DNA of 64,000 nucleotides from Bispira polyomma (GCA_965649765.1 OZ287757.1:31186001-31250000), one strand, 5' to 3'; positions 1 to 53,397 are shown, numbered from the stretch's first letter. The notes: a model not told the origin generated them from the letters alone. Program-made: numbers and translations.

Positions 1-830
1 CAGAAGTATGCAAGGCCATCATTAGGGAATATGAGACAGAAAACCTAGCCTGCCCAACCACCCCCGCAGACTGGCTGAAAATAGAAGAAGTCTACAGGAA
101 CAGGTGGAACATCCCTCATGCTGTTGGATCTATTGATGGAAAGCACGTGGCCATCAAGAAGCCTCCCAAGGCTGGGAGCAAATTTTACAACTACAAAGGT
201 TTCCAAACCATTGTCCTGTTTGCCCTGGTTGATGCATACTACAGATTTATTTGGGTGGACATTGGCTGTAGTGGTTCTTGTTCCGATGCCCAAATTTTTA
301 ACCACTCAGAGCTCAAGCAGAAGATAGAAGATGAATCCATTGGGCTGCCCTGACCTGCACCACTGTTTGAGGGGTCTCGACATGAAGTGGAATATTTTCT
401 GCTGGGAGGCAACGCCTTTGCCCTGCAAAACGTGGATGATGAAACCTTATTCGAGGAAGGAACTCACCCATGCACAGAGAATTTGTAACTACAGGATATC
501 CAGGGGAAGGCGGGCAGTGGAGAACGTTTTTGGGATTTTGGCCAGCCGTTTCTGCCTATTACTGATGACGATGCAACAGCACCCCTAGTGGCCTCAAATC
601 TGACATTGACATGTGTAATATTACATAACAAACTGAGAAGCCGGTGTGGAAACTCAGCACTAGAGCACCGCAACCCACAAGATGATCCACCTGAACCCAA
701 GGTGCAGTTGGTAGGAGATTGACCGACCACCCACAGAAACCCATCCAGGGCGGCCAAAGAACAGAGGGACGTGTTAATGGACTTTTTTATGAATGAGGGG
801 GCAGTCCCGTGGCAAGAGGAAAGAGTTTAA
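1..830 (+). pseudogene. Mirror copy of the 3' part of the Harbinger transposase
   Basis: Reverse complement of 5998..6827, with the same stops and frameshifts. Confidence 0.9.
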
Positions 831-3011
831 CCTGAGCCTGAGCCTAACTTCCTGAGCCAGATGAGAAGCCAAACCAGAGGTCTTGCAGTAGCAGAAAATT
901 TAAAAGGTCCTTTTCAGGACCACCCAAATATTTCAAAAACAATGTTTGAGCGGTTGTTACACCCCCACCCCAAACCCATTAGCAATAACAATCACTAAAT
1001 ATAATACCCAGGACCCCTACATACATACAACTTAACCAGTCCCCCCACAAAACATTGAAAATGTTAAAAGCCCTACACACACAGACATAATGAAAACCCT
1101 TGTTACCAGTTGTTTTGGGCAAAAAAGGGTTAAAATCAAAAAAAGTTGTGTGACCATATATTTATTTAGAGAAAATATTTCTTATCATGAACAGTCGACC
1201 TTTAAAATAAAACACTTGATGTCTCTAGAGTACATTTGAAAGAGAAACAAGTTTTAGGAAGTTTATTTGAAGAGTTTATATTTATCTACCCCTAAGTACA
1301 TTTAAAAGGAATTTCAGTTGTAATGGCTTTTTTGAGAGAAGAAAAACTGCCCCCTCCAGAGTACATTCAAAAGAGAACAAAAATGTAGGAAGTTTATTTG
1401 AAGTTTTTAATGACTTTAAGTACAGTTGCTATTGTAATATATTTGAAGAGAAGCTGTCCTATAAAAATTATGTGTAATGTTCACACATCACTTAATTGCA
1501 ATGAGCATCCTCACACTAAAATCTCAGTACAATGGGGTCTATTTCAAAGGGATTACCAATGGGTATGACTTAAAGAAGTAAAATACAAAATATTTTTTCA
1601 GTTAATAGAAGATATTTTAGATGAAATGAGCTAAGCACAGCATTCTGGGCTTTGTGCCCAGAGTTTATAATAAAGAGCCAGTTATATCAGGCCTCACAGA
1701 AAAGTACCATCAAGTTTTATTATGATACTACAACTGTTGTTTGTTAAATATTTTAAAGTTTGTTAAAAGAAAAAATAAAGTATGATGAAAAAGCTTACAA
1801 AAAAGACTATTATTACTTTGGACTCCAACTATTGTCAAGTGGTGGAACCCGCCGGAAACACACAACTACCACAAAGCCAAATTTACAGAAAAATCTGAAT
1901 AAAAGACACCCAACCACCATTTGACAGAATTTATAACGTCAGTGTAAGGCCTTGGGTTCGAATCTGTTTCAATAAGGGGTTTCTTTCATCAGTGTGTATG
2001 TTGGGGTAAAAAATTATTTTGTGTATTGTGGGAATCTACTGTGTTTATATGGTGGGGCCAAAAATATTATATGTATGGGTGCTGGGTTTGAACCTTGTGA
2101 AGTATGTTTTGTGAGATGTGATTGGGTAAGGGGTGAGGAAAATAATGCGCTATAGTGTTAAAGGTAGATGCATTTATTCCTGTTCCAAGGGATTTTATTG
2201 TGTGATCTACTTCACTCGGAGTAGAAGGGAACTGGAGTAGTCCAGATGGCGGCTAACAAGGGAGTTTGAGATCAGTGTTTTTGATTTACAAATATATAGC
2301 TGAAAGAAGTTAGATGAATCTATAAGATCAGTATAACGTCAGGAAATCGATATCATATTTGGTTACTGTGATGTAAGCATTTAATCAATAACCTGTATGG
2401 ACTGCTAAAACTAACAATTTTGGCTATGTAGTACAAGTTTAAGTCCTAGCCATATATTTGAATTAAAATTCGTACACTAATCACAAGTCCAAAGTACAAG
2501 TAAGAGCTTTCTAATCATACCAAAACGAACATTTCAGGTGAAGTTTTCAAATAAGTACACACAATTTAGGCGATTTAAAAAAAATAATTCTGTTTCCAGG
2601 GTGCCCAACGGATCTCCGAGGATTAAATTTGTATGCCATTTTCGAAAGTGAGGCTTATTTTCAAAAATACAATAAAGTTCTGAGTTTCAATAGTTCCATT
2701 ATCGAAATTAATCCAAAAACAAAACAGGAGCACAAGAGCCCAAACTCTAGACTCGTTTGCGAATTTCAGACCATAGCTCCATACCAGTTTCGAGATCTGC
2801 TTGTGGAGAGTTAAAGATCTCTGGCCCCACAATAAGAACCTTGCTCGCACATGCGCAACGAATGGTAAAAACGTAAAATGTTTATAGAGATACATGTACA
2901 TCTAAATAGAAGAAAAGTAGGTGAACTTATTTATTGGAAATAAACAGAGGGACACATGCTTTTATCTATGTTAACCAACCATACTGGGTTTAGAAATCCA
3001 TCATAAATTAC

Positions 3012-3089
3012 CTTTTCATTCAACATGGCCTCTATTTCCTCTCCTTTCAGGCCTCTTTCATGTAGAAATTTTAGCAAATCGTCATCCAT
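3012..3089 (-). pseudogene. Mirror copy of exon 1 of the SAM-HECT gene
   Basis: Reverse complement of 3739..3816. Confidence 0.75.
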
Positions 3090-3208
3090 TAGCAATTATT
3101 CTATTGATATCCAAGATAATATCTAGTTGGTATAAACAATTTTGACGTTTTCTGAAAGTACAGTGCCCTATTGTAATTATCTAAAGCATGTGACCTTTCT
3201 GCTCTCTT

Positions 3209-3622
3209 GTAATTACTAGATAGCTATCTTGTAGTAATAAGATAGCCTTATATAATAATTAAAAGATAGCCCTATCTTGTAATTACAAGATAGCCCTATC
3301 TAGTTATTACAAGATAGCCCTATCTAGTAATTACAAGATAGGGCTATCTAGTAATTACTAGATAGGGTATCTTGTAATTACTAGATAGGGCTATCTTGTA
3401 ATTAAAAGATAGCCCTATCTTGTAATTACAAGATAGCCCTATCTAGTTATTACAAGATAGCCCTATCTAGTAATTACAAGATAGGGCTATCTAGTAATTA
3501 CTAGATAGGGCTATCTTGTAATAACTAGATAGGGCTATCTTGTAATTACAAGATAGGGCTATCTTTTAATTATTATATAAGGCTATCTTATTACTACAAG
3601 ATAGCTATCTAGTAATTACAAG
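3209..3622. repeat. Array of ~24-bp self-complementary units (AGATAG-cc/gg-CTATCT + wGTAATTACw); left subterminal repeats of the IS3EU-like element
   Basis: Visible units such as agatagccctatct-tgtaattaca. The same motif recurs degenerately at 17360-17401. Confidence 0.9.
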
Positions 3623-5399
3623 AGAGCAGAAAGGTCACATGCTTTAGATAATTACAATAGGGCACTGTACTTTCAGAAAACGTCAAAATTGTTTATACCA
3701 ACTAGATATTATCTTGGATATCAATAGAATAATTGCTAATGGATGACGATTTGCTAAAATTTCTACATGAAAGAGGCCTGAAAGGAGAGGAAATAGAGGC
3801 CATGTTGAATGAAAAGGTAATTTATGATGGATTTCTAAACCCAGTATGGTTGGTTAACATAGATAAAAGCATGTGTCCCTCTGTTTATTTCCAATAAATA
3901 AGTTCACCTACTTTTCTTCTATTTAGATGTACATGTATCTCTATAAACATTTTACGTTTTTACCATTCGTTGCGCATGTGCGAGCAAGGTTCTTATTGTG
4001 GGGCCAGAGATCTTTAACTCTCCACAAGCAGATCTCGAAACTGGTATGGAGCTATGGTCTGAAATTCGCAAACGAGTCTAGAGTTTGGGCTCTTGTGCTC
4101 CTGTTTTGTTTTTGGATTAATTTCGATAATGGAACTATTGAAACTCAGAACTTTATTGTATTTTTGAAAATAAGCCTCACTTTCGAAAATGGCATACAAA
4201 TTTAATCCTCGGAGATCCGTTGGGCACCCTGGAAACAGAATTATTTTTTTTAAATCGCCTAAATTGTGTGTACTTATTTGAAAACTTCACCTGAAATGTT
4301 CGTTTTGGTATGATTAGAAAGCTCTTACTTGTACTTTGGACTTGTGATTAGTGTACGAATTTTAATTCAAATATATGGCTAGGACTTAAACTTGTACTAC
4401 ATAGCCAAAATTGTTAGTTTTAGCAGTCCATACAGGTTATTGATTAAATGCTTACATCACAGTAACCAAATATGATATCGATTTCCTGACGTTATACTGA
4501 TCTTATAGATTCATCTAACTTCTTTCAGCTATATATTTGTAAATCAAAAACACTGATCTCAAACTCCCTTGTTAGCCGCCATCTGGACTACTCCAGTTCC
4601 CTTCTACTCCGAGTGAAGTAGATCACACAATAAAATCCCTTGGAACAGGAATAAATGCATCTACCTTTAACACTATAGCGCATTATTTTCCTCACCCCTT
4701 ACCCAATCACATCTCACAAAACATACTTCACAAGGTTCAAACCCAGCACCCATACATATAATATTTTTGGCCCCACCATATAAACACAGTAGATTCCCAC
4801 AATACACAAAATAATTTTTTACCCCAACATACACACTGATGAAAGAAACCCCTTATTGAAACAGATTCGAACCCAAGGCCTTACACTGACGTTATAAATT
4901 CTGTCAAATGGTGGTTGGGTGTCTTTTATTCAGATTTTTCTGTAAATTTGGCTTTGTGGTAGTTGTGTGTTTCCGGCGGGTTCCACCACTTGACAATAGT
5001 TGGAGTCCAAAGTAATAATAGTCTTTTTTGTAAGCTTTTTCATCATACTTTATTTTTTCTTTTAACAAACTTTAAAATATTTAACAAACAACAGTTGTAG
5101 TATCATAATAAAACTTGATGGTACTTTTCTGTGAGGCCTGATATAACTGGCTCTTTATTATAAACTCTGGGCACAAAGCCCAGAATGCTGTGCTTAGCTC
5201 ATTTCATCTAAAATATCTTCTATTAACTGAAAAAATATTTTGTATTTTACTTCTTTAAGTCATACCCATTGGTAATCCCTTTGAAATAGACCCCATTGTA
5301 CTGAGATTTTAGTGTGAGGATGCTCATTGCAATTAAGTGATGTGTGAACATTACACATAATTTTTATAGGACAGCTTCTCTTCAAATATATTACAATAG

Positions 5400-7765
5400 C
5401 AACTGTACTTAAAGTCATTAAAAACTTCAAATAAACTTCCTACATTTTTGTTCTCTTTTGAATGTACTCTGGAGGGGGCAGTTTTTCTTCTCTCAAAAAA
5501 GCCATTACAACTGAAATTCCTTTTAAATGTACTTAGGGGTAGATAAATATAAACTCTTCAAATAAACTTCCTAAAACTTGTTTCTCTTTCAAATGTACTC
5601 TAGAGACATCAAGTGTTTTATTTTAAAGGTCGACTGTTCATGATAAGAAATATTTTCTCTAAATAAATATATGGTCACACAACTTTTTTTGATTTTAACC
5701 CTTTTTTGCCCAAAACAACTGGTAACAAGGGTTTTCATTATGTCTGTGTGTGTAGGGCTTTTAACATTTTCAATGTTTTGTGGGGGGACTGGTTAAGTTG
5801 TATGTATGTAGGGGTCCTGGGTATTATATTTAGTGATTGTTATTGCTAATGGGTTTGGGGTGGGGGTGTAACAACCGCTCAAACATTGTTTTTGAAATAT
5901 TTGGGTGGTCCTGAAAAGGACCTTTTAAATTTTCTGCTACTGCAAGACCTCTGGTTTGGCTTCTCATCTGGCTCAGGAAGTTAGGCTCAGGCTCAGGTTA
6001 AACTCTTTCCTCTTGCCACGGGACTGCCCCCTCATTCATAAAAAAGTCCATTAACACGTCCCTCTGTTCTTTGGCCGCCCTGGATGGGTTTCTGTGGGTG
6101 GTCGGTCAATCTCCTACCAACTGCACCTTGGGTTCAGGTGGATCATCTTGTGGGTTGCGGTGCTCTAGTGCTGAGTTTCCACACCGGCTTCTCAGTTTGT
6201 TATGTAATATTACACATGTCAATGTCAGATTTGAGGCCACTAGGGGTGCTGTTGCATCGTCATCAGTAATAGGCAGAAACGGCTGGCCAAAATCCCAAAA
6301 ACGTTCTCCACTGCCCGCCTTCCCCTGGATATCCTGTAGTTACAAATTCTCTGTGCATGGGTGAGTTCCTTCCTCGAATAAGGTTTCATCATCCACGTTT
6401 TGCAGGGCAAAGGCGTTGCCTCCCAGCAGAAAATATTCCACTTCATGTCGAGACCCCTCAAACAGTGGTGCAGGTCAGGGCAGCCCAATGGATTCATCTT
6501 CTATCTTCTGCTTGAGCTCTGAGTGGTTAAAAATTTGGGCATCGGAACAAGAACCACTACAGCCAATGTCCACCCAAATAAATCTGTAGTATGCATCAAC
6601 CAGGGCAAACAGGACAATGGTTTGGAAACCTTTGTAGTTGTAAAATTTGCTCCCAGCCTTGGGAGGCTTCTTGATGGCCACGTGCTTTCCATCAATAGAT
6701 CCAACAGCATGAGGGATGTTCCACCTGTTCCTGTAGACTTCTTCTATTTTCAGCCAGTCTGCGGGGGTGGTTGGGCAGGCTAGGTTTTCTGTCTCATATT
6801 CCCTAATGATGGCCTTGCATACTTCTGGTATAAACTTGGTGATAGATGATTTCCCCACCCTGAACTGGTAGAACAGGGACTTGTAGCTCCCCCCAGTGGC
6901 CAGGTGCCTCAAAGTTACAGCCAGTTTCAGTACAACATCCAAGAGCTTTCTGAACCAAGTTATTTCTTTTTTCACATGGGATGTTATCCTATCCTTGATT
7001 TTGTCAAATATATCAGGTGGGAGCCTGAAAAAATTCCTGTATGAGGCTGCATCCCCTTCCTGTAGCTCCGGCACTAAGTTTGTGTAGTAGCCTAGGGCCT
7101 CTCTCTGACAAATCCAAGGCTTGACCCAGCAGATGGGTGACATACATGGAAGTCTAATCTTCTCCGGGGGAGCCCAAGGGGGGCGTGGGGGTGTTGGGTT
7201 CAAATCTTCCTGAGCCTGAGCCTGAGCCTTGTCTTTCTCATGTTGTAATATAAGCATGAGGATACATATTTCAATCTCAAAAAAAAAACTAAAAATGTCT
7301 CTAGTCTCCTCAATAAATCTTCATCACTTCTTCCTGGAATTTTACTGAATTACTCAATCATTAATGACCTGATTACTGAGTTTTAGGGCTCAAAAAGAGG
7401 TACTTATAGGGTCTGGAAGCACTCCCGAATTCATTTTTCAGAAAGTTCGATCCTATTGGTCGGGATGACCAATACGTCAGATCCTATAGTCAATACGTTC
7501 GATCCTAAGCCAATACGTTCGATCCTATTGTCAATAAGTTCGATCCTATCAAGGTCGGGAAGGTCGGGGGTCAATGGAGTTCAAAGTCGTACGGCCTTTA
7601 CGTACGATCGGGGTCGCGGGCCCGTCAAAACCGTTCAATCGGGAAGGTCGGGGCACATTTTTATTTTCCCGCCCAAAAAGTGGATTTTATTGATTTTTTG
7701 GTCCCGACCTTCCCGATTTTAAAGTCGGGGTCTTTTTGCCAATCGAACTTGTATGTGGAACCCCC
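5400..7765 (-). mobile_element. Harbinger element remnant inside intron 1 of the SAM-HECT gene
   Basis: Transposase, subterminal repeats (aatacgttcgatcctat, tcgggaaggtcgggg; 7443-7730), and a plausible end gtggaaccccc|tta. The left boundary was not found and is approximate. Confidence 0.6.
5998..7257 (-). pseudogene. PIF/Harbinger (HARBI1-like, DDE_Tnp_4) transposase
   Basis: KLAVTLRHLATG, GSIDGKHVAIKKP, FYNYKGFQTIVLFALVDA, GSCSDAQIF, YRISRGRRAVENVFGILASRF. Has an internal TGA at ~6475, a frameshift, and GGNAF where GD-x-AF is expected. Confidence 0.92.
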
Positions 7766-9039
7766 TTAAGGTTAAAGTAATTGGTAGGGTTGAGTTATGA
7801 GAGTTTTGGGAATTTTTTGTAGTACAACAGAATTTTAGTATAACTTGTGTTATATAGAGTATAGAGACATTTAATTAGTACTGTAGAGGGAGTAAACCCC
7901 ATAATGGTGTTTAAATTGTAAAAGAATAATTTTAAGTTGGAAGTAATCTTGCTAGTGCTTATTAAATTAATATGATGTAGCATTTTTTTGTCAGACTCCT
8001 TTTACATGCAGACAATTAATATCACCAGAAACACCAACCATTGGCTCAGTATTACTTCCAGTCATATGTCTTTTGTTGTAAATTTCAGATTGATAGGGCA
8101 GTTATAGAAGCAGTGGATGACGAAACCCTGGCACGATTTATTTCAAAGCAAGGAGATAGAATTGCAATCAAGCAATTTTGCCAGACGCATTGTAGTTCCA
8201 ACCTTGGAGAGGCGAAAAAAAAGTCATTACTAACTGCTTTACGAAACAAGCTGCACGGAGCAAACACCAAGGACGATATGCCTTTAAAAAAACTAAGCAC
8301 ATGCAGGGCAATGCACATGCACTAAAAAAAAACAAGAAAAATTGAATTGGGGTGGCTGAATTTTGATCATTGTTACAAACAAGTGAAAAAGTCTAGTGGA
8401 GGGGGCACAAAAAAAGATTGATATCTCAAAGTCAGCTACAAAAATGGACATCCTAAAAGAGGCTAAGGCAATGTTTTTTCCAAATGGAATATCGAAGATG
8501 GTACCTATACATCAATTTGAAATTGAGTTGCATGACTTTTCTAAAGATATTCTAGTTAGAGAGGAAACCGTTGGAGTAATGTACGATAACAGGTATGAAT
8601 ATGCTGCAGTTCTATATATCGACGAAAAGCATTACATCAAAAACATCTTTCAGTACACCTCAGCCTAAAGGGAGACCAAATAGACCCTCAATTGTATTCC
8701 CTGACTTTGAAGATCTAAGCACACATGCATCCACTAACTCTAATTCTGCATCATCAGCAAAAACAGCAAAAACCATCCTAAACTTAAGGAGTGAGCAAAA
8801 CACTGAATCGCCCCCGTCAAGCCCTCTTTGTGACATTGGCCAATTCCTCCAGTCACCATTAAACTAGGAAGGGGCCTTTGAAAATACATGTGAAAATATT
8901 GGGGCTGAAATTGCAGTTGAAACTACACCAAATACTGTGCAAATAGAAAGTGTACACTATCAAGAGGATGACATTTCTTTCTACATACCATCATAAGTTT
9001 GGAAGGACAGCCCTATTGAAGTTTCCTCATCTGTTCTTC

Positions 9040-9390
9040 CTACCGTATCACACCCTTCCAGTGTATTGAACCCTCCCAGTGTATCGAACCCTTCCAGTGT
9101 ATCGAACCATTCCAATGTATCGAACCCTTCCTGTGTATCACACCCTTCCAGTGTATCAAACCCTCCCAGTGTATCAAACCCTCTCAGTGTATCGAACCCA
9201 TCCAGTGTATCGAACTTTCCCAGTGTATCACACCCTCCAATGTAACGAACTCTCACAGTTTATCACACCCTCCCAGTGTATCACACCCTCCCAGTGTGTC
9301 GGATTCCTACACTGAATCACACCCTCCCAGTGTGTCGGATTCCTACACTGTATCACACCCTCTCACTGTATCAGAAGGTCCCAGTGTTTC
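9040..9390 (+). repeat. 18-bp coding tandem repeat (agtgtatcgaaccctycc; SVSNPS/SVSHPP)
   Basis: Visible tandem units that make a Ser/Pro-rich linker before the HECT domain. Confidence 0.9.
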
Positions 9391-9564
9391 AAACCTTCAG
9401 ACCATGAATTACCCTTATACCCTGAATGTTTCCATTAAAAGGCATAATTTGATGAATGATATGATTGACACATTCAAAGACCCTGCAATCATTAATGCTC
9501 ATTTGGTAGTAAGTGTGCTGCTACCTAATGGAGCAAAAGAAAAAGGTGAAGGTGATGGTGTACT

Positions 9565-9764
9565 NNNNNNNNNNNNNNNNNNNNNNNNNNNNNNNNNNNN
9601 NNNNNNNNNNNNNNNNNNNNNNNNNNNNNNNNNNNNNNNNNNNNNNNNNNNNNNNNNNNNNNNNNNNNNNNNNNNNNNNNNNNNNNNNNNNNNNNNNNNN
9701 NNNNNNNNNNNNNNNNNNNNNNNNNNNNNNNNNNNNNNNNNNNNNNNNNNNNNNNNNNNNNNNN
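9565..9764. other. Assembly gap (200 N)
   Basis: N run; both flanks share 'tact'. Confidence 0.99.
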
Positions 9765-9874
9765 TACTTGCTGACTGCTTCACTGGTTTTTGGGATGAAT
9801 TTTATGAGGAATGTACCCTTGGTACTCAGGAGAAGGTACCTTGTTTGACCTGGATGGTAATCAGTCGCTTCTAT

Positions 9875-10000
9875 ATGTATAGGTCCCATCTTCGACATTC
9901 CATTTGGAAAAAACATTGCCTTAGCCTCTTTTAGGATGTCCATTTTTGCAGCTGACTTTGAGATATCAATCTTTTTTGTGCCCCCTCCACTAGACTTTTT
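9875..10000 (-). repeat. Inverted copy of 8386-8512 inside the HECT region
   Basis: Minus strand reads SSGGGTKKIDISKSAAKMDILKEAKAMFFPNGMSKMGPIH; a few substitutions relative to 8386-8512. Confidence 0.92.
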
Positions 10001-12007
10001 TGATCTAATATCTGAAATAGCACACAAGGAACTGCTACAGTTACCTATGTATATTTTGGACAATTGTAAGATTATTTTAGTCAAAGAGGGAAAGTCACTG
10101 ATTGATTTTGGCAAATTGCACCTCGTGTACAAAGAAGCCATACCAAAAGGAAGAACAGTTCTGAAGAGGCTTGTTTTTCCAGAAGACATGACCTTGTCTG
10201 AAAGCAGCACAGCTAAATATCTGCAACGCTATGTAAGAGAATTAGACTGCCGCATGCTTAAGCTACTTCTACGATTTTTCACTGGCTACAACATTTTGAC
10301 AAAAAAACAACAGGTTATACATGTCTTTTCAGCCATGACCGACTTTAGTAGAAGACCTATAGGACACACTTGTGGTAGAACACTTGAATTGTGTCAAGAA
10401 TATCCCACTTATCCAATGTTTCGATCAGAGATGAACATTGTGCTAGATAGTGGCATATGGAGTTTAGACATAATTTAGAAGAAATACAAATTTATGAGTT
10501 GGATATTCTTGACACAATTCAAGTGTTCTACGCCAAGTGTGTCACAGAACATTAGAAGTTTAGATAATGGAAGTTTCACTATATTTTGGAAAATATGTCT
10601 CAGGAAATGTGGTGGAGGTAATTTGAACATTGATTACAAGTTTCAACTTAAGTACTGTCTGTTAAAAGACTCAAAATTCTGTTTTTTCCTAATTAGTGGT
10701 GCTGGAATAGCATATAGTTTTCAGAAGTTTAGTACTTAAGAGGAAAATCGAAAATAAAAATAAATATTTCACACTTAGTATCCCAGAGGTAATTACAATG
10801 TACATATTTTATTTTAATATTGTCATAATTTGAATGCAATTGTTAATTACATTTTCTTTTAGACTTTGAAAAATGTAATTTCATATCTTAGTTGGTGGTA
10901 TATTGATATTAGTAACCTAAAGTTTGTTACAATTGGTGGATTGACATAATGATAAAGAAAAACTTAAAATTGAGTACCTTTTCATAATTTGGTCACTGTT
11001 ATGTCATAGAATTTTCATATTTTTAGTACTGCAGAATGTAAACATAGTTCATGTTCATCATTTCAGAGGTAATTGGAATTTTTTACATAATGTTTTAAAA
11101 TACATAAAAAAGTTCTTTTAATTGTATTTTTGTTATTGTATCCCCAGACGAAAGTGAAGGATACTTAGGATTTGGTTTAGTCATACCGCCACAGAGACCT
11201 GGACCTGATAGCTCTAAAAATATTTTAGCTACAGCTTTCATATTTTGACTGGGTTGATTTAGGCAATGACTTGGCCTATCAATTTGTGATAATAATTAAT
11301 TAATGCATTATTATTCTCTGATTTAAAACAATCTGATAATTATAATGACTGATTTGTTTCACATGATGAAGGCATAATTAGCTCTGCCTTCAAAGTCAAC
11401 ATTCATATCAAAAGATGGAAACTTTTGACTTCATCAATTGAGATAGTGATGTGACCTTGTGGCAATGGTGTCTAGGTCACTAGTGTTCGAGAAATAGTTC
11501 ATGTTGCACAGATCTCTGCATCCATCTGTTTGTCGTTACTACTTTGTGAAAATGTTTTTTGGTAGTTTTCTTTATGAGTAAAGTATTTGTGATATATTTG
11601 CTAATATATGGTACACTACAATTACATATTCCTTGTTTTCGTGTTGGTCCCCCTTCCGAAATTGAGTTCACCTAATTTTCTCCTATTTAGGAATAAGTTG
11701 TCATTGTAAAAGTTTATATCTTGTTTAAAGACAATTTACACTAGTCTGAGTTTGAATCATTTTACAAAGTCTTTTTTACGATAGAGTTCCTTGGAGTTTG
11801 TAGCATCTGTATCCGTCCATTACCCATATCTACAAATATTTTTGAATTTTCCCTCTCTTCCCTGTATAAAGAGCACTTTCTTTGATAATCTTTTTTAGAA
11901 CCACTGAAATGATCAGTCTGTAACTTTGCATACATAATTACATATAGCTTCATAGTTTTAGTTTTAAGGTTATGAATGTTCAGTTTCATAAAATGTCAAA
12001 TATTGGG

Positions 12008-13080
12008 CTTAGCACCCTAGGTAGCAAGGACCTTGAACGAGGGGCCCGAGGTCAAATCGGACCACATCAAAAGATTCCAAAGCCATGATTTTGTAAAAGT
12101 GGTTTTACATCCAAAACCTGTTTGACCAAAAATAAGCGAGATATAGGCACTTTAAAGTTTGGCCAAAATCTGTCACTTGGGGTACTTTGGCACTCCGTCG
12201 ATGACCTTGAATGAGGAGATTCAAAGTCTAATGTCTGCATGCTTATACAGGTCATATATATCCCTTAAACATATCACCCGTAAAGAGATACTACCGTCTA
12301 CTGCTGAGAAATAGTCACAGTTAACAGCCTGATTATTTTCAAATAACCACACGTGGTAACCATCTTGTTTTTCAAAATGAGGCCAAAATAACTGCCATGC
12401 AAGGTTTTGTAGAATATTTAGTGTAAATTTCAGGAGCCTAGGTGTAACAAAGCGTAATCCAATGTATCCACCACTTTTACACCCCGAGGGTTACCCAACC
12501 TTTAAGTAGGTCAAAGTTCAAATCCAAGAATAAAAAAAAAATACCCATGCCAGGTTAAGATAACTGTTAAAAATAATTTTGATGCAGATAATATTAAAGG
12601 AGATATTCAAGGAAGACCATGTGGTGACAAGATAACCAGTGTTGACACCAAATAAGGGCCTCTCATTCAAAATCAAACGTGGATAGCTAAACTTAAAAGT
12701 GCTTATAACTCGTTATTATTGGTCCTAGAGGTTTGAGGTGTGAAACCAACCTATAGGGATTCATGGACTGGGAGTCTTCTGATGTGTTCAGGTTTGAGCT
12801 TGGGCCCCTCCTACAAGGTCAAACGAGGATAGCCAAACTTAAAAGTGCTTATAACTTGCTTATTATTGGTCCTAGAGGTTTGCAATGTGAAACCAACTTA
12901 TAGGTAATCATGGGCTGGGAATCTTCTGATGTGGTTAGATTTGACCTTGGGCCCCTCCTTCAAGGTCAGACGAGGGTAGCCATAGTGTGGGTGGTAGCTA
13001 GGGTAGTTCCTACCTAGGGTGCTTTGTCTTTCTGGTGGATAAAAATATGCATCGGTTCTCCGATGTGGTAGGTCTAGTTT
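12008..13080 (+). mobile_element. Non-autonomous Helentron/HINE-like element with internal ~130-bp tandem repeats
   Basis: Subterminal inverted repeat agcaccctaggtag (~12011) / ctacctagggtgct (~13010), then a 3' hairpin catcgg-ttct-ccgatg and a ctagtt end. A partial second copy lies at 20093-20258. Confidence 0.55.
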
Positions 13081-14039
13081 ATTTTAAAAAACAATATTAT
13101 AGTATCTCACTCAGTAGAAACAAATTAAAAGCTACCTTATATTTACAACTTTTACTTTATTTTCAAATGTGTTTAGTATGGATAAACAAATTTAGGTGCT
13201 TTCTTATAAAGACCTTTGAATGTCATGTGTAGATATGAGACGATGTGTCATCTTCATACTAAGTTAAAATCTCGATAAACTACATTTCATAAGTTTTTAT
13301 GCAATGCTGTTCCTTCTGCTAAATCAATGGGATACCACCAGCTATTTTCATCCATATAAATGCGACAGAGCTCTGCAATATCTTCATCACATATGGTATC
13401 GCCCCAGAATTCACACTCTTCTGCACAAGCTGTAACATTGTGGTCACTAACTTCATGGAGATAAGTATGGGTTCCATATAGCCCAGAAACACAGTACATT
13501 ACCAAAGGACGTCCATGGCGACAATTTTAATTCTTGCTTGGTCTTATTTGATGTGTATTCCACACCTTTGCCATTTTATCAAGGTCTACCTGAAATGGAG
13601 AATAAAGAGAAATAAATTATGGAACGGTAGTAGCAAGAAATATGCACCTCAATTGAGCACTGCGTCAGCTGCTTTACAGCCAGTGATGATGATGGAACAT
13701 GCTTGGAACAATACATCTATCCTTTATAATGATCCAGAAAACTGAACTTCAAAAGTTTAAGCTTAATGTCATGGTCAATTAAATTAAAATTTCACGGTAA
13801 GTTAAGACGCTATAGTAGAGCACATGAGCACTTATCGTTTTACAGAATTTTTAAGGCACAAGAAGCTAGGATGGCTAGTAAAATTTAAAAAAAATAGTTT
13901 CTTGGAGAATTGTTTAAAATTACAAGACCCGATAACAGTAACATGTAATTGTGCAATTGCCAACATTTAAATAGCAGCCTAAGGGAGGTCTCCGGGCACA
14001 TTTGAATTGCTAATTGCTATCCGAGCCCATATTTTCCTA

Positions 14040-14600
14040 TCTTATCACATAGATTCGAAATATGTAGAACAAAAATTAAAAATTAATGTGACCCCAGTTT
14101 GACAATGAGCCATACGTCTCGTGGAGCAAACATTAGTGGCTCATTAGTCTCCCAGCACATGGTTAATTGTACCCTTATAATACAGGGAATTGAATTGATG
14201 ACCGTAGAGGTCTCGCCTTTCAGGGTTAGGAAAATGATCTTTAGACACAATAAGTGGCTAGTAATCAATTCAATTTTGTCTGGATTGAGTTTCAGCTTGA
14301 CACTTCCCATCTACTTTTGCACAGCCTCAAGGCATTTTGCCAACTCTGATATGCTTCAGACAAAATTTGTTGCATCTAGTACTAAGTATAGTTGTGTGTC
14401 GTCAGCATCAAGATGATGAGTGACGTTGAAGTGAGAGATTATATTACTGAGGGGAGTGGTGTACATGGTGAAGAGAAGAGGGCCCAATACAGATCCTTAT
14501 GGGACACCAAGAGGAAGTGAGAAAGCTTTGGAGAATTAATCACCAATTTGAATTTTTTTTGCTTTCTGCAATGCAAGTAGGACAGTATCCAACAAATCCA
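14040..14600 (-). mobile_element. L2/CR1-type LINE reverse transcriptase fragment in the transposase intron
   Basis: [19 protein letters not shown]...[22 protein letters not shown]. Confidence 0.85.
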
Positions 14601-14603
14601 AGG

Positions 14604-14830
14604 CAGGGGCCGCAGTCACCAAGTGGCTATAAGCATTTGTTTTAAAATCTCTGACCTCTAGGGATCAAATTCTTAACTCATGTAAAAATGTTTGTCAGAT
14701 TCTTGCCGTATTTGGGTGGTTTACAGTGCTTGAGGACTGGTTTCCCTCACCACTAATACTGGCTGTTGCAATATAACCAAAGTTGTTGTAAGCGACAAAA
14801 ATCTAAATAAATTCAAATAAATTTAAATTC
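14604..14830 (+). mobile_element. Degenerate tRNA-derived SINE
   Basis: ggggccgcagtcaccaagtgg A-box-like head, ggtttccctcacc...actggctg...aatataacc core and AT-rich tail. Confidence 0.5.
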
Positions 14831-17408
14831 CAACTAAGGACGGTGCATCAATTCCAAGTCAATCAGTCAAAACAAAAGATATGTTTTTATTTTTAAATAA
14901 TACATATTTTAGAAGATGAGATGCTTTTAATTTGCTCTGTCTTTTCATATGAAGGACACCAAGACTATCAGGTGTCTTATGTAATATTATTTTGTACTAA
15001 CCTGTAACAGCCGAAGAAAACAGAACTGGATTAGGCTTTTATCAACTAGATATCCATTGAACAACCCTTGGTCAGTTAAAGTACCTAATGTATCCATCCA
15101 TGACTGACAACAAAGTTTTCTGAGGATATTCCAGAACATTTCTATTCTCTGATTTGCGGTGCCTCTTCCAAAAATAAATGACTGTCTGTCAGTTAAAAAT
15201 TCTTGCATCTGTGCAACATGACCATTCTCTGTGCCTCTATCTCCTCTTATCAAAAATGGGCAACCTTTCTTTTCACGTATTGTTTCAATGTAGTAACCTG
15301 CAACAACTTTTGGATCAGTGTTTGTCTGGAAGGCATTTAGCCACATAATACATCTTGAAAATCCATCAGTACATCCATTTATGCAAAGTCCATAACACTT
15401 CAGCTTATCATAGGAATCAAAGTGCCACAAATAATAAGGTCCTTTTGCATAGTATGCTCGTCTCTTCAATCTTCGAGACAAACGTAACCTGACACCAACT
15501 GGATCAAGGATCTACATAAGTGTTTGTACAGTATCTCTTGGGATGTTAATACCACCATGGCGGCACTGAAGATGCATCCATCGGTAACCTTGCTGACCCC
15601 GTTTTACTTACTGTGTCTAAAATGAAAAGTGTAACTTCCAGTATGTCTGCATGGTTCTTTCTTCGGTACAAGTTGCTCTTTCTGAGTGTTCTTTTCAATG
15701 TGCTCAAACTTATAACAATAGAATGTACTTGAGCTAACATTGACAAAATATGAGTATAAGTTAGCCCTAAATCAAAGTAAAACTTGCACAGCCTTGTCCT
15801 CTCATCCATTTTCTGAAAAGAAAAATAGACAATTTTTATTCAATCAATACAGCAAATATGCTAGCACAGTTACTGTTACCTTATATGAACTTCATGATAA
15901 ATCCAGCGAGATATTGTACTGACCACCAATAAACTTCTCTGTTTTACTACTCTCGTCACCATGAACGATTTGTCCTGGTTGCACCACCGAACATCTTTCT
16001 GGACATCTAAAAGAAATTTCGCCACCATCTCAAAATATTGATTTTTGTGAGTTAACTAAGTTTGCCAAAATCGCAGCCCAAGATTTTTCTGGACCATAAA
16101 AATATGTTGCTGCCATCACTAAAATATTTTTCTACCATGTGAAAATAGTCCCCGCCATCGCCGTCACCTAAAGGTTTTCATCAGTAATCAAGCACTGTAT
16201 GTAAAGCACCGACCTATGGCAGGTGCATGATAAACTTTCCTACATGAAGGAATGAACAGGACTCCCATATTGGTGAGAGAATAGTGATTGTTAGCAAGCA
16301 ATTCTAACTACTAGGCCAATGTAGCCCTGTATAACAGGCATGGATGATACTAGTACAGGTAAACAGGTGTGAGTGATTATGTTTGTTTGCTGTATGTTTG
16401 GTTTGACCTTATTAAAGCGCTATAGTCACTTTGTGGCTCTCAACAAGATATAGAAAATCCATTAGTGAGAATGGTGCATGTAAACAAAGATAGTGCAGGG
16501 TTTTTAATTTCTTTGTAGCCAGGTAAGTCTTTCGAGGCAGCAAAATTTGTTGTTGACCAAGAAAATCTTTTATTTCAGTGATGCTGGCAAACTTTGTTGG
16601 TGGCAGGGAAAATAGCGAGGTTTCTGGGTGGCAGCAAAAATATTTTGTGGCGTAAAGGGTGCCGAACTTGTATAGTGAGTCCTGCCCATCCACCACATTA
16701 TTTGGGTGGGTGACATTTTTCCATGGGAATATATTTCGCAGGAGTTACCATGAAGTACAAACTCTTCAGTATAAGTAACTCTTAGTAGTCACATTGGGTT
16801 ATGTGTATTATTTTGTTATATTTGTAATAATAAAAGTACCTCTGAGGATAAAAGTCCAGGACAATGCATTGATGCACAAGAACCCAGAAAATTTGAGGAG
16901 TATAAAACCCCAGCACTTTTAAAAAGAAAACACAATATTATTACTTATCAAGTTGGGGCCACTGCTTAAAAATATTAGTACTTGATTATATTTGTTATTA
17001 TTAATGGCCAAGAGCCACTTAAAAGGGTTAAAATGGTCCGACTATACTTCATAACTTTAAGGTCCAACTGTCAATCAAATTTCGTTAAACCATATGTTTT
17101 TGATAATTATTTGGAAGGGCAAACAGACTGATAGGAAGAGGTACTTTGACCCCTTTCAAGTTTAGTTGAAGCTGACAGGTACAAATGATCAGAGACGTAA
17201 ATTTGTTGGAAAACATAGTTACATATTTGTTATAAAAGGTTACAATTTTACTCCAGACATTAGCAGATTTTATATAATCAATAATACTTACATGACTTTG
17301 ATACTCCAGACATAAAATAATGCACAATCTTGTTCGTCTGGTGACTGCAATGTAAAAAGAGCTATCTAGTAATTTTATTAGCCCTATCTTGTAATTACAA
17401 GGCTCATA

Positions 17409-18440
17409 AACCATCAAGAAAAAAAAGGGAAAAAAGAACCATAAGCAATGTTTAGGTAGATGGATTCGAATGAAGCAAAATTAGGAAGATTGATTTCAGT
17501 CACATTGAAAATCTTTTTCACAAAGACTCCAATGCCTCTCCTGTCTCTGCGAGGCTTTCGAAAAAAATTCTTTGCAGGGGGGGTCATACTATGTAGAAAA
17601 GGGTCTGTCATTTTTTCCAATCCATGTCCCAGTGATACCAACTACGTTAAGTTTGTTACTGAGTGTACTGTCAACAACTAAAGGTCCCTTGTTTCTGATG
17701 GACCTGGCATTAAAGTTGCCAATTTTCAAAGTATTTTTAGTAAGGCATTTGGGGCCAGGATTTACCTGGATGTCACCAGACAGGGACAGCAAAAGAATAG
17801 ACCACAACAGATAAACATGAGGAGCTCTGTTTGAGAAAAATTTATTTTTACTTTGGCAGAAAATAGCCACATGCACTTTATTAAGTGCAAAGATTATTGA
17901 GGGTTGGATACCAGGTTTATATGGTGACGGCAATTCATCTTTGGCTGATGCAGAGCTGATCCAGATGAGGACCACAGCACAAAAAACATGTAATGGATGC
18001 ATAGTTGAACCAGACGGACAAGAAGTGGTACAGCCCCAAAAAATTAAAAATCAAGTGACAACTCGACAGCACTGTATAGCTAATTTTCTATGTGTAGTTA
18101 ATTTACAGTGAACAATTCAAACACAACCCAGCACTCCTAACCAAACAGAGTGAAAGCCAATACAGGAAAAAATTCCAAGTAATGAAATTCAGGAAAAACA
18201 ACACAACAGCATTCCCAACCAAGAGGAGTGAGCAAAAAAAAGTAAAAAAATTCAGAGGAACTTTATTACAATTTGCAGCACAAGGGTACGTATATAAAAA
18301 TAGTAGGGTTTACAGTAGGGGATTCAACAATTTCAAGTAATATAAATCAGGAAAAACAACTCAACAGCACTCAACATGCCTAAGCGGAGTAAACAATAAT
18401 ATAGTAGTAACAGCACAAGGGTGCGTATATTGCACAGCAC
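17409..18440 (-). mobile_element. 5' part of an L2/CR1-type LINE (2A-like motif + APE endonuclease start), cut at 17408
   Basis: LLLSLSGDIQVNPGP...LKIGNFNARSIRNK...VVGITGTW...PRRDRRGIGVFVK...FESI. Confidence 0.85.
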
Positions 18441-18759
18441 GACCCAGCAGGGGTCTGATGGTTCAGTTGTCTCACTAAAGTTGTCATTACCTTAAACCCT
18501 GGAGGCAGAACTGACCAACATTCGTTCTGTCCACCCACATAATGCTGACCAATGAAATTGCTTCTTTACCAAGAGTTTTCCCTCCAAAATCTAGAGCTCC
18601 TCCATATTGGAATAAGATTCAGTGAAGAAACACGTACATTTTAAGTTTATGAAGGCATCACTGAATTTTTACATTTTTAGTATTTTAGTTTTTTTATACA
18701 TTTGTTTGTTTTTAATATTGCTACATTATTTTACGTGTGTGTCATATATAATTGTTGTT

Positions 18760-19560
18760 ATGGGGCGATCAGAGAAGCTTTGCTCTACTAAGAAAACACC
18801 AGCTACAGTAGAGGGAAAAACTAGGGCTCAGAAGAAGACATCAAAAACAAACGTACTAAACTCTAACATGGATGACAGTATTGTCACCGATCTGGGATTC
18901 GGAACCGTCTTATCTTCACAACTAGCGTCCCCGATTAACGTTCAGAACCAAGCTCTGGGCCTCGTCAACCGGCTGTAGCTCTTCCCCTTCAATATACACA
19001 GCACCAGCCTACTCCAGCAGACGTGAACCCTCCTCCATCGGGCCATGAATCCGAAATGCTCAGGATTCTTAGGAGGCTGGAGCAATCCAACGCAGAGCTG
19101 ACTCGGCGACTAGACAGGGTCGAGGCGAAAGAAACCACTAAGGCGGCAGTATCACAGCACTGTTCTCTCTACTCAACCCACCGTTTACACGGGTGCGACG
19201 ACGCTGGCTGCTACACAGCAGAAAGGACTCGGCGTCACGGGCGGATCTGACTATGCATCAGATGGCATAGTTCCACGACCGGACGTACTTAAGTCACTAC
19301 CGGATGTCCAGGCCCTGGTCAACCTGAAGTTAGCTGAGTACAACATGCAGGCACAAACAGCGTTCCAACAAGGTAAGGCTGTTCTCAGGCAGAAATCTGG
19401 CCGTTTTAACTGTACAGACATACCCAATAGTAACCCAAAATTAAGATGGCCCAACGAGGGATGCACTGGGGGATCTGCCAAGAAACGCCCTGCGTATGAC
19501 GACTTATCACTACCCCAGTGGGCTGCCGGGAAGCTACTGTAGTCTTAGATTCTAACATAC
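18760..19560 (+). mobile_element. Gag-like ORF1 remnant of a DIRS-order element
   Basis: Coiled coil (LRRLEQSNAELTRRLDRVE), then KSGRFNCTD...RWPNEG...YDDLSLPQWAAG, resembling ORF1 of tyrosine-recombinase retrotransposons. GC-richer than the flanks. Confidence 0.55.
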
Positions 19561-36189: not shown

Positions 36190-37680
36190 GATATTGTGTG
36201 TTGGGGTTTATTTTCTTTTGGAAACAGATTTTATCTCTTCAGCATCTGTGAAGGTTTTACAAAAACAACGGTGCAAAAACCACATTCACTGTTCAATGGC
36301 ACATCTGATAATTATTCACGATTTTCTTCTTTGTGGACTCTTAGTCTACTTCCACATGAATGCCTCATCTTTGGTGATTTTTACATAAAAGTATACATAA
36401 ATGAGGCCTGGAGTACCAATTTGAAAGCCATCTCAACGTTTTTTGGCTACATTCAGCACATTAAAACAGCTACCCACATCCGCAACCATATTCTAGATCT
36501 AGTAATAAGTCAATATGAGTCAACTCTGCTAAAAACCACAGGTGTCTCTGACGATATCTACTTTTGCAACTATTTCATTACACAAAGATATCAAAGGTAA
36601 AACCAAAGTCTTTAAAATTCGTAGATTAATAAAACCAACATACAAAAATTTAGAAATGACATATTGCCCTCTAACTTCAAATACCCATGTAAACAACATG
36701 AAAGTTCAGGCAACCAATACCACAATCCTCTTACCAAAATACTTGACACACAAGCACCAGTCACCAACAGAGCAGAACTGTTCCACTATCTCCTCCTTAT
36801 CAATACTCGACCATAGCCATTTCTGAGGACAAATGCTGTAAGCGTCAGCTTCAGAGAGTTTGGCATTAGACTTATTACCTCCTCCCCTCTCAAATCCCGT
36901 GACTTAGATCCCATTGCTGCTTCTGTTCTTTCGAAATGTCTTGCCATTCCTATTTCACCCATCACCAACATAGTTAACTTATCACTTTTCCTGCCTGTTT
37001 TAAAACCACTTTTGTTACCCCCCTACTCAAGAAATCCAGCCTTGATAAAACACACTTTAAAATATTAGGCCAGTTTCTATAGTTTTATTTCCAAAATGTT
37101 TGAAAAAGGCTGTTGCTAATCAGATTACGGAACATGTTCAAAAACAACAAGCAGCAAACCTACATCTGCCTACAGAAAACATCATTCCACTGAAAGCGTG
37201 CTCTTACACACATGTAATGACATCGGACTTGCTGTTGACAAAGGTGAAGTAACTTCTCTGACACTACTGGACCTGTAAGCAGCTTTTGATACCATCAACC
37301 ATAACATCTTTAAAGCCACTTTTAGAGCTTTGTTGACATTGAATGCCTCGTTTTGCATTATACCTTGCCAAAAAAAAGCCAAAGAATTAAAATTGATGTC
37401 CATCTTTCTATCTCTTTAAGCTTACCTTTTGAGTCCCCCAGGGATTCATCTTCGGGCTCCTACTGTTTATTACACCTTTCCTCTAAGTTATGTTATAAAC
37501 AAACTTAATATCAAACATAACACGATGACACCCAAGTCTTAAACTGAATCCTAACAAAACTGAATTAATGCTAATCGGCACTAAAAAGACAGGGATAAAC
37601 TTAAATAATTAACTAACTATTCGGCAATGATGTACTCCCAGCTGATGAAGTAAAGAATTTATGTGTCACTTTTGACTTTT
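36190..37680 (+). mobile_element. Degenerate L2/CR1 LINE (APE + RT)
   Basis: CLIFGDF, THIRNHILDLVI, VTPLLKKSSLD, SAYRKHHSTES, LLDL*AAFDTINH. Confidence 0.8.
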
Positions 37681-38024
37681 TTCAGTTAAAAGCTGTGAAT
37701 AACATTATGGTCTGTAAAGAAAATTGTCTCATCTTTTATATAACCTTTCATTCAGACTTGCTTTCAAGTCTTTACTGTTAGTGCAACACTGTATGCCTGC
37801 ATTTTACACAGTTCCCATTCTGTTCAAAAGGTGTCAGCACTAGCTTCTTTATTTAATCCCAAATGTAAACCAGAGGCCTGCAATTGCTGGCGTGAGGTCA
37901 AAATTTTACAACAGGAGTAGAGTGCATCTTTTCAATACTACTGCTTCAACAAGCTTACCTGTGTGTGTGTGGATTGTTAAAAAGGACTCCAGTAAAAACA
38001 CAAGTTTAAATTTCCCTTTCAGTT

Positions 38025-41000: not shown

Positions 41001-42640
41001 TATGTGAGCGTAGTAATTTTCCACACCAATAAATCATATAGCAGATGATGTTAAAAGTGATCTAAAAGCCAAATAAACATACAACCTTTCACTTATGCTC
41101 CTTTTATCTATATTTATAGGATATGACATAGTTGGGGACAATGTGGACATCAAGGCTCATGTTAAATAACAGCGAAAGAACCACCACATGCTCAACCTAA
41201 TTGACTACAAAAATCGCAAATTGAACTTAATGACACTGCTTCACAGTATAAAAGTGAGGAATTTCCACTCCATAATTTTATACCAACCTGTGATGTAGTA
41301 CAGAAGTTTAGAGATCAGTGTGCGATTCTAATTGCTAAGACTTGGGTCGAACATCTTCCCACATTTGCTTGGATGAAGAGAATGTTACCAGCATACATCC
41401 CTCATGAACACATCACTTCACCAAACAAAAAACTGAAAGGGTGCACCTCGGATTGCTTTTTAAAAACGAAAACAACTTGGATGAGATGCAGGACATTGTG
41501 CAAGATATTCACAAATTTGTCCCTGGATCTGATTTTGAAAAGGAATAGTCTTTATCAAAACTTAAATGTGGTGGGGATTATCTGACATTTGAACACTATT
41601 AAAGAGTTCGAGAACTGAATTCTGATGGTAGAAACACCAGCAAATGACTAGAAGGGTTGATACCAAATATGGAGCTTTTCCATTTTCAGGCTGGATGGAA
41701 CGTAGTTATCTGGAAAGTTTTATTCAAAATCAGTTCCCAGAAAGATATTGGCACACTCTATGCTGCAAGATCAATGCCAGAAATAATGTAACCAAAGATC
41801 CGGGTAACAACTTTTATGCAGCTGAAGAGTTGTTAAATAAGTATACAGCAGCATATCTTGCAACAGTAGCAATTTATTTCATTGACATGGATAATGAAGA
41901 ATCATATCCAACAGTGAATATGATTGAACATGGATTCTGAACAAACTTTGAAAAATATTTCTGATACCATTTACAAGTCTGTGGATAAATCTTTTCAACA
42001 TGTCACACCTCCCGCATCTGATAAATCACCTATAACACTTCAACTTCCATGTCTGTTTTGTTGGAAGGCCTACAGAAAAGGGCCTGGTGTTTTGCGTCGA
42101 CATGAAAGACAATGCCACAGTCTTCCACATCAGATTGATGAAAGACTGGAAAAAGCTACTTCTGTAGATGAAGATAAAGTGTTAAACTACACTTAATGTG
42201 CCTTAACTTTGCTTTTGTTACACATGAACATAAATGATGCAATACAAATGGGTGATGGTGATTGAATATATAGAAATGTGGAGTTAATGTACTTTTATTT
42301 CAAAGTAATTGGCTGTTTTAAATATGCTCTCGAATGTTTGGAAACTTTGTCTCAAGTTAAATGCCTCTTATCACCCTGTTTGGCATACAGACTGAAATGG
42401 AACAGAACAGTAAATACAAAAGGAAAAGTAAACACCAATTATTCCAAAGATTTAGATGTAGAGCATCACAGCAATGTAGTTAAACAACATTTAAAAACAT
42501 CCAGTAGAATCAGTCGCAGTACTGACAGCACAAGCCAAATAGCAGGCCATATTGCTGAGATTACAGGGGACAGAAGACCTAGTGGAAAGCATAAAACAGC
42601 TAGTACCAAAGATGACATAGCATTATTCATCAACTAGTTT
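38025..42640 (+). pseudogene. Academ-like (DUF6589-type) transposase pseudogene, spliced
   Basis: HPG|YDIVGDNVD across intron 40253-41119, then VVGDYLTFE, NVTKDPGNNFYAAEELL, a C2H2-like CLFC...LRRHERQCH, DAIQMGDGD, KYALE and WNRTVNTKG...KDLDVEH. Many stops. Superfamily assigned from recalled motif pattern only. Confidence 0.65.
40815..41000 (+). mobile_element. tRNA-derived SINE (copies at ~45960-46145 and ~60613-60798)
   Basis: ggggctcggtgttgtagtgg A box, gggttcaaatcc B box, (caat)n tail. Confidence 0.7.
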
Positions 42641-44845: not shown

Positions 44846-45054
44846 AATTTTGCAGTAACAGCGGCTTGAATCAAAAATATAAATTTAATTTGTCATGTTA
44901 GAATAGGAATAACCAATTCTAAAGCACGGTATACTCTTGGAGCATAGAAACACTCAGGCTTCGCCTTCATGTTATTACATGGTATCGTGGTAAAAATGAC
45001 CATATACCGAGCTTTGTCATTAGTTATTCCTATAATAATATTTTCCTTTGACAA

Positions 45055-53361: not shown

Positions 53362-53397
53362 ATTTCTTAAGGTTATAATTGTATAACCTTAAGAAAT

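Follow-up and report, generated by a model that had tools for sequence, protein, structure and literature searches.

A stretch of 64,000 nucleotides from the genome of Bispira polyomma (C10:31,186,001-31,250,000, OZ287757.1; assembly of 1.035 Gb in 75 contigs), referred to here as the window, carries at positions 3415-17401 a unit that is very probably a dead copy of a cut-and-paste element of the IS3EU/GingerRoot superfamily, in which a HECT ubiquitin ligase gene belongs to the element itself and would serve as an accessory transposition factor. The canonical element starts with TAYGG and ends with CCRTA, has terminal inverted repeats (TIRs) of approximately 50 bp or longer, subterminal arrays of short palindromes and a 6-bp target site duplication (TSD), and contains exactly two convergent genes. 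These encode an rva_4 DDE transposase of approximately 350-400 residues and a ligase of approximately 600-750 residues consisting of a SAM-like bundle, a ubiquitin-like (UBL) beta-grasp domain, a disordered linker and a bilobed HECT domain. Transposase type, TA..TA termini with TIRs and a 6-bp TSD (the latter two observed in full copies) are all those of IS3EU/GingerRoot elements, and relatives of the transposase come from taxa in which IS3EU has been reported, namely Danio, acorn worm and other fish.

Linkage and boundaries of the two-gene unit

An open reading frame (ORF) at 14990-15511 on the minus strand of the window was matched by Pfam rva_4 (7e-24) with the D, D and E residues of an integrase core visible, whilst an ORF at 9978-10475 on the plus strand encodes a HECT C-lobe scoring 21.2 bits against Pfam HECT, just below the cut-off of 23.9. 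The two genes are convergent, as stated in a preliminary description of this DNA, and the integrase-type D-D-E triad reported there is confirmed. Six-frame searches of the genome located 28 transposase loci and 22 HECT loci. An rva_4 transposase was found within 40 kb of 20 of the 22 HECT loci, in convergent orientation at 19 of these, where approximately 0.2% per locus would be expected by chance; the tail-to-tail linkage that the preliminary description had singled out for checking is thus present at nearly every ligase locus. The pairs form at least three lineages, family A (which includes the window copy), family B (C6, C2 and C9) and family C (C9 and C2), with proteins 35-50% identical between lineages. 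Long open frames are retained in families B and C, with HECT proteins of 649 and 745 residues and a transposase of 346 residues. Both genes are mostly single long ORFs in intact relatives, so that of the two spliced genes initially described the genes themselves stand and the heavy splicing does not.

The same pairing was observed in other genomes. Searched from the ligase side, four of five foreign loci were paired, with a convergent transposase 4.5-8 kb downstream (Ptychodera flava, Mytilus trossulus, where the neighbour is annotated rva_4, Paramisgurnus dabryanus and GCA_977065575). Five loci chosen from the transposase side by taxon and contig size alone (Antedon, Holothuria, Saccostrea, Archocentrus and Danio aesculapii) each have a HECT gene in convergent orientation 2-7 kb downstream. 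Both sides together give pairing at nine of ten foreign loci, from a hemichordate, echinoderms, bivalves and fishes. The pairing is old; it has been kept in three lineages only 35-50% identical to one another and in hemichordate, echinoderm, bivalve and fish genomes. At the Holothuria leucospilota locus (L035 2260-7321) a DNA methyltransferase gene (N6_N4_Mtase) is also present 2.7 kb upstream of the transposase. Public gene models from Colossoma macropomum (L032) and Acnodon (P0016) join the HECT ORF to a piggyBac-derived transposase domain (PF13843); these fused models are probably annotation chimeras spanning neighbouring elements.

Complete ends were found on two fuller family A copies, located on C7 and C4 and approximately 95% identical to the window copy. 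Both extend some 55-75 bp beyond the limits of 3414 and 17408 originally given for the window element, to a TIR beginning TACGGAAGCC. They share a TAC/TGGAAGCCTATACAGCTCA start (TACGG), TIRs of approximately 50 bp, 24-bp arrays just inside these and a CCGTA end, and are flanked by 6-bp TSDs, CACTTT around the C4 copy and GAATAC around the C7 copy. The left terminus of the C7 copy also carries a 15-bp tandem duplication of the first TIR bases (TACAGAAGCCTATAC then TATGGAAGCCTATAC, local positions 10460-10490). A family B copy on C6 has TATGGAAGCC ends, TIRs of its own (TATGGAAGCCC…) and a perfect TSD, GTTTAC. Among foreign elements, that of Mytilus trossulus spans 16.2 kb (L030 6512-22670; TSD AAATGC), and a compact cichlid element spans 6.65 kb (L037 9675-16321; TSD AGTATC) and contains no genes other than this pair, both of them open. 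Elements across phyla share the first ten bases of the terminus (TAYGGAAGC) as well as subterminal palindromic arrays. The TAY..RTA ends and 6-bp TSD named in the preliminary description as features of IS3EU agree with both the full copies and the literature.

Both genes are therefore enclosed by TSD-flanked TIR units in five independent cases (C4, C7, C6, Mytilus and the cichlid). These data bear on the view that the ligase is encoded by an ordinary gene of the host, or by a passenger captured once, which merely lies beside IS3EU insertions. Transposons do capture host fragments, fungal IS3EU elements carry other cargo in the form of alpha-kinase and TET/JBP genes, and one Colossoma fish locus has a HECT gene with no transposase nearby. 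However, the five bounded units, the paired state of 20 of 22 loci here and nine of ten in hemichordate, echinoderm, mollusc and fish genomes, and an element of 6.65 kb made up of just the two genes leave this view highly improbable. The original proposal that the ligase is a gene of the element and not of the host is upheld by the TIR- and TSD-bounded units, by its multiple copies, by the linkage within this genome and by the occurrence of the pair in other phyla.

The arrays inside the TIRs of family A are built from a 24-bp unit composed of a 14-bp palindrome, CTWGTAATTACWAG, and a 10-bp spacer. In the window the palindrome occurs 11 times, only at 3206-3622 and 17388-17401, with a chance expectation of 0. 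The left subterminal array at 3177-3630 consists of approximately 18 units fused to their own mirror image (Tandem Repeats Finder (TRF) period 24, 17.8 copies), and the same array is present just inside the left TIR of the C7 and C4 copies. At the right side two units are left at 17361-17401 before the window copy breaks off at 17402, whilst the C7 and C4 copies run on with more units to the TIR ending CCGTA. The claim that a 24-bp palindromic repeat bounds the unit is thus correct in that the repeat is real and confined to these two places, but the arrays are subterminal and not terminal. Acorn-worm subterminal palindromes (CTCGTAATTACGAG; Ptychodera flava L029 7480-9750 and 19430-21680) share a GTAATTAC core with those of family A (CTTGTAATTACAAG), and a different subterminal palindrome (…TGTGCGCACA…) is present in the Mytilus element.

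This arrangement also bears on the possibility that the unit of 13-14 kb arose by segmental duplication, with the 24-bp repeat as an independent miniature inverted-repeat transposable element (MITE), or a satellite, that landed twice. The window copy does lie within a large palindromic duplication, described below, and its own ends are not transposon termini. However, the flanks of the C4, C7 and C6 copies differ, their 6-bp TSDs are perfect and their TIRs match; palindromic arrays lie directly inside both TIRs of every full copy, a position at odds with the independent MITE that the preliminary description had itself considered; the Mytilus and Ptychodera elements have palindromic arrays of their own in the same place; and the palindrome motif is found nowhere else in the window. 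A duplication of this kind is accordingly extremely improbable.

Ligase and transposase proteins

Intact single-ORF paralogues were used for folds and searches, and the window exons were searched singly. An intact paralogue of the transposase was matched by Pfam rva_4 at 5e-29, and two intact ligase paralogues, with 27.7 and 26.0 bits, passed the Pfam HECT gathering cut-off of 23.9. The AlphaFold model of the 649-residue paralogue contains a bilobed HECT domain with a predicted local distance difference test score (pLDDT) of approximately 90 over residues 312-630. The top 50 Foldseek matches for this model were all HECT-containing ligases, including Rsp5, HUWE1, NEDD4, UBR5 and E6AP, with a best E of approximately 1e-10; a sequence search against solved structures returned weak C-lobe matches only (E 5e-4 to 9e-3). 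The window exon and all 18 relatives covering the site have the catalytic Cys (HTCG). The N-terminal 242 residues of the Mytilus ligase were modelled as a five-helix bundle (residues 8-67) followed by a beta-grasp domain (127-228); pLDDT exceeds 90 in both, and the beta-grasp domain matches Atg8, SUMO, ubiquitin-like and UBX structures in Foldseek (E approximately 3e-4). UBL-domain matches filled the Foldseek list for this N-terminal model. The designation SAM-like is supported only by the predicted shape of the bundle; in an Atlas cluster of molluscan relatives SAM_1 was assigned to 24% of members, with SAM_2 also present. The SAM-like N-terminus and the HECT C-lobe with its HTC motif, both named in the preliminary description, are consistent with the AlphaFold and Foldseek results and with the HTCG of the window exon. 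No zinc finger was found by Pfam in the ligase proteins, and N-terminal fingers of the PHD/RING-like type seen in G2E3 were not encountered.

Trees of the two genes, each including the three lineages from this genome and three foreign loci, recovered the same three families with full support, and pairwise distances of the two genes correlate with r = 0.97 (Mantel p = 2e-4), a correlation that mostly reflects within- versus between-family structure. As judged from substitution ratios within family B, the ligase is under purifying selection. For the cichlid pair, a complex was predicted between the transposase and the SAM-UBL part of the ligase, with an interaction prediction score from aligned errors (ipSAE) of 0.43 (three runs, 0.39-0.45), the best of three controls scoring 0.00; at least 28% of contacts agree between runs, partner pLDDT is at least 64, and the tool grades the result as weak support.

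A family of domesticated host genes lying beside decaying transposase relics, with a ligase that no longer serves the element, would fit the many gene models annotated as ordinary proteins and the large protein clusters named HECT domain-containing protein or G2/M phase-specific E3-like. The Atlas clusters bearing the latter name score 0.77-0.87 against the ligase proteins, and the link to G2/M phase-specific E3-like annotations drawn in the preliminary description is at present only a lead. Against domestication, the pair is bounded by intact TIRs and TSDs, both ORFs are open in young family B copies (dS 0.014-0.06), the transposase is under similar constraint and multiple copies are present at different sites. 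Domestication is therefore very unlikely, and the ligase is best regarded as a gene of the element.

A number of observations weigh against this assignment. In this genome two HECT loci and seven transposase loci lack a partner, although these are mostly fragments, and the Colossoma HECT locus has no transposase within 10 kb. At three foreign loci the TSD was either not recognisable (the L033 and Danio elements) or imperfect (Ptychodera). Pfam SAM was absent from the five ligase proteins tested. The ratios of nonsynonymous to synonymous substitution (dN/dS) in family B, 0.17-0.52 for HECT and 0.39-0.67 for the transposase at dS 0.014-0.06, rest on 7-30 substitutions per comparison. Deep branches of both gene trees are unresolved, so that of the gene-tree comparison envisaged in the preliminary description the agreement in families holds and strict co-phylogeny is not established. 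According to the prediction tool, a pass of the kind obtained for the complex is wrong in the majority of cases unless the proposed interaction was likely in advance, and the mechanism proposed below is inferred from domain content, conservation and this one weak prediction. No paper joining HECT with IS3EU was found in the accessible literature, and the ligase ORF may already stand in Repbase or Dfam entries.

Within the proposed mechanism, the subterminal palindromes are probably candidate binding sites for the helix-turn-helix region at the transposase N-terminus, and the ligase would act as an accessory transposition factor. We tentatively prefer a route, itself somewhat doubtful, in which the ligase attaches to the transposase through its SAM-UBL end and its HECT domain adds ubiquitin either to the transposase or to proteins at the site of transposition; in this way the ligase would govern how the post-integration complex is turned over or removed and how repair takes over. 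Ubiquitination of a host chromatin or silencing factor, shielding the element, is almost as probable, and the remaining probability falls to some other role of the ligase. Counter-silencing and transposase regulation, suggested in the preliminary description, are putative roles. More broadly, animal IS3EU may have been two-gene elements with a catalytically competent SAM-UBL-HECT ligase since before the deuterostome/mollusc split, with the ligase needed for efficient transposition, a proposal we hold at a little under even chances. If true, this would be the first transposon-encoded ubiquitin 'writer', and the 'G2E3-like' HECT proteins of aquatic animals, divergent and present in multiple copies, would belong to transposons and not to the host.

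The window copy and its surroundings

The window copy (3415-17401, plus strand) is an IS3EU-type DNA transposon of family A lacking both TIRs, approximately 95% collinear from array to array with the TSD-flanked C7 and C4 copies, in which alone the true ends are seen. The 5' part of the ligase gene, which covers the ubiquitin-like domain and, before it, the latter half of the SAM-like domain, lies at 8020-8665 on the plus strand, as indicated by alignment to intact paralogues and by the fold of the homologous region. Ligase proteins of the cichlid, Mytilus and Ptychodera match 8119-8587 by tblastn, and the short SAM/UBL exons of the window gave no Pfam match. Tandem repeats of 18 bp detected by TRF at 9045-9369 (plus strand) occupy the position of the disordered linker, which has pLDDT below 50 in the model. 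The HECT N-lobe begins at 9428-9868 (plus strand; tblastn matches at 9428-9565 and 9767-9868) and is broken by a run of N at 9565-9764, the flanks being collinear and in frame relative to C7, C4 and the mirror arm of a palindrome described below. It is followed at 9875-10000 on the minus strand by an inverted duplicate of 8396-8520, which by blastn against C7 and C4 stands in place of approximately 250 bp of HECT N-lobe kept in those copies; the inverted repeat (8410-8512 and 9875-9977) is 97% identical. The C-lobe exon with the catalytic Cys (GHTCG) occupies 9978-10478 (plus strand; Pfam HECT 2.6e-4) and was placed by alignment to paralogues.

The run of N does not appear to conceal sequence. 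The letters directly before 9565 and directly after 9764 are both 'tact', and the flanks align as a single unbroken stretch with a 4-nt overlap in C7, C4 and the mirror arm. No sequence seems to have been lost, the 200 N marking a contig join as a placeholder. If the shared 4 nt are read a single time, the HECT frame runs through the gap (…GDGVLADCFTGFWDEFY…), in agreement with intact paralogues, a reading that uses the letters of the window alone with none borrowed from other copies.

On the minus strand, the C-terminal exon of the transposase lies at 13278-13592 (tblastn with transposase queries P0070 and P0033, residues approximately 273-402). The remainder, at 15002-15857, is composed of an N-terminal region (15594-15857) and the DDE core (15002-15592; Pfam rva_4 7e-24) in two frames. 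This split in the tblastn alignment indicates a frameshift near 15592, and the same stretch is one ORF in a copy on C5. The window copy is dead, as originally described: both TIRs are lost, the transposase is frameshifted and part of the HECT N-lobe has been lost to the small inverted duplication.

A nested Harbinger/PIF transposon of a high-copy family is present at 5672-7765 on the minus strand, with transposase ORF pieces at 6243-7320 (Pfam DDE_Tnp_4 1.8e-12 and 3e-6). The family is approximately 2.1 kb long, with more than 40 genomic copies at 88-92% identity sharing the limits of this one, and first-look candidates genome-wide number in the thousands. The nested Harbinger is whole in the C7 copy and mostly retained in the C4 copy, which has an internal deletion of approximately 1 kb. 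Since both copies share it, the composite element transposed after the Harbinger insertion. Gene-to-gene spacing is 4.5 kb in the window compared with 2.6 kb in the compact cichlid element, and the extra length probably holds other insertions. A 147-bp tandem repeat (2.1 copies) lies at 12673-12982, between the transposase and HECT genes.

The left side of the window copy is not a transposon end. Positions 1-3367 are the reverse complement of 3461-6827 and form the inner part of the mirror arm of a palindrome of approximately 32 kb, which runs on for about 12.7 kb upstream of the window. When 20 kb of upstream sequence was compared, 3461-19536 was found to be wholly mirrored upstream on C10 at 99.9-99.98% identity, the arms differing outside the central array by two substitutions and one 3-bp indel. 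The axis lies at approximately 3414, within the 24-bp array, and it follows that 3414, the left limit in the preliminary description, is not a transposon end. The right limit of 17408 fares no better: the sequence 'ggctCATA' at 17402-17409, which had been taken as the RTA terminus, was rejected because the window copy stops inside the array at 17402, and in the C7 and C4 copies further array units follow before CCGTA is reached. An interrupted long interspersed nuclear element (LINE) reported at this point likewise found no backing, as the ORF fragments at 17417-18050 on the minus strand gave no Pfam match and resemble the start of an apurinic/apyrimidinic endonuclease in an N-terminal motif by eye only.

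The palindrome reaches 2.1 kb beyond the right side of the element, to 19536. An ORF at 18616-19539 (plus strand, no Pfam match) is cut at this edge and continues in the mirror arm, which suggests that the upstream arm is the original context. Whether the palindrome is an assembly artefact, produced by a fold-back or by a chimeric contig end joined during scaffolding, is evenly balanced. The arms are 99.98% identical, one of them contains the 200-N scaffold join with its 4-nt overlap, and a second palindrome of 17 kb in the window starts exactly at the other N gap, with the 4.9 kb before that gap repeated directly after it. However, the arms are not perfectly identical given the two substitutions and the 3-bp indel, the two outer junctions enter different unique sequence with the ORF cut at 19536 continuing in the mirror arm, and an array of short palindromes is the expected start of a real hairpin-primed inverted duplication.

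The second palindrome, at 44846-61913, is its own reverse complement at 99.9%, with an axis near 53380 and a 4-nt loop between perfect arms. Within the wider region (37613-64000), 37613-44645 mirrors 56968-64000, and the 4.9 kb repeated across the second N gap correspond to 39700-44645 and 44846-49790. Palindrome and repeat look like unmerged or fold-back contig ends. Two identical ORFs of 204 residues, at 52247-52861 (minus strand) and 53897-54511 (plus strand), were matched by Pfam Glyco_transf_11 (fucosyltransferase, 1.2e-33) and are mirror copies within this palindrome.

Relation to known systems

Repbase has listed IS3EU since 2012-13 and the description of GingerRoot dates from 2019 (PMC6839031); IS3EU is a recognised but barely studied superfamily. 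Its elements have TA..TA termini, a 6-bp TSD, a DDE core of the integrase/IS3 type and TIRs of tens to hundreds of bp, and occur in fish, acorn worm and other aquatic animals (PMC6839031; Kojima 2023, PMC10045372). The element described here has the same DDE core, termini, TSD length, TIRs and taxa, whereas a second gene in animal elements is mentioned in none of the accessible papers, the GingerRoot paper included, and the ligase is a constant partner here. The superfamily is thus known, and no description of its conserved ligase partner seems to exist in the accessible literature. A conserved and, on the substitution data, selected HECT ligase as second gene offers a concrete handle on the use of ubiquitin by a cut-and-paste element, and natural elements of approximately 6.6 kb with both frames open make its biochemistry amenable to ordinary assays. 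Hundreds of models named 'HECT domain-containing' or 'uncharacterized' in fish, bivalves and echinoderms would be transposon genes, and surveys of HECT family expansion would need to leave out such transposon-borne models.

A close parallel exists in fungi, where IS3EU elements with TAYGG..CCRTA termini contain a gene for an alpha-kinase, in the orientation opposite to the transposase, and in some cases one for a TET/JBP dioxygenase, cargo read as a factor acting on host control of the element (Kojima 2025, PMC12730594). The terminal motif and the opposed second gene are common to both groups, but the second gene encodes a kinase or dioxygenase in fungi and a HECT ligase here, and TET genes pass from one superfamily to another, whereas the HECT gene appears to stay with its lineage.

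A very divergent group of 'G2E3-like Metazoa' proteins was recognised in a survey of HECT ligases in which transposons are not mentioned (Grau-Bove et al. 2013, PMC3673628). These resemble the present ligases in having a very divergent HECT domain barely detected by Pfam. G2E3 itself, however, has N-terminal PHD/RING-like zinc fingers and a HECT domain that is non-functional in mammals, whereas the present ligases combine SAM-like and UBL domains with a retained catalytic Cys.

Enzymes of the ubiquitin pathway are carried by other mobile elements. Ginger1 transposases occur with OTU or Ulp1 protease domains, Ulp1 is found in Mutator-like elements and OTU in Helitrons, and on this basis the ubiquitin pathway was proposed to be widely involved in transposition (Bao et al. 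2010, PMC2836005), an idea founded so far on protease domains fused to other transposases. Like these, the present element brings its own enzyme of the pathway; unlike the protease of Ginger1, which removes the modifier and is fused to the transposase, the ligase adds the modifier and is encoded by a separate gene with SAM and UBL domains of its own.

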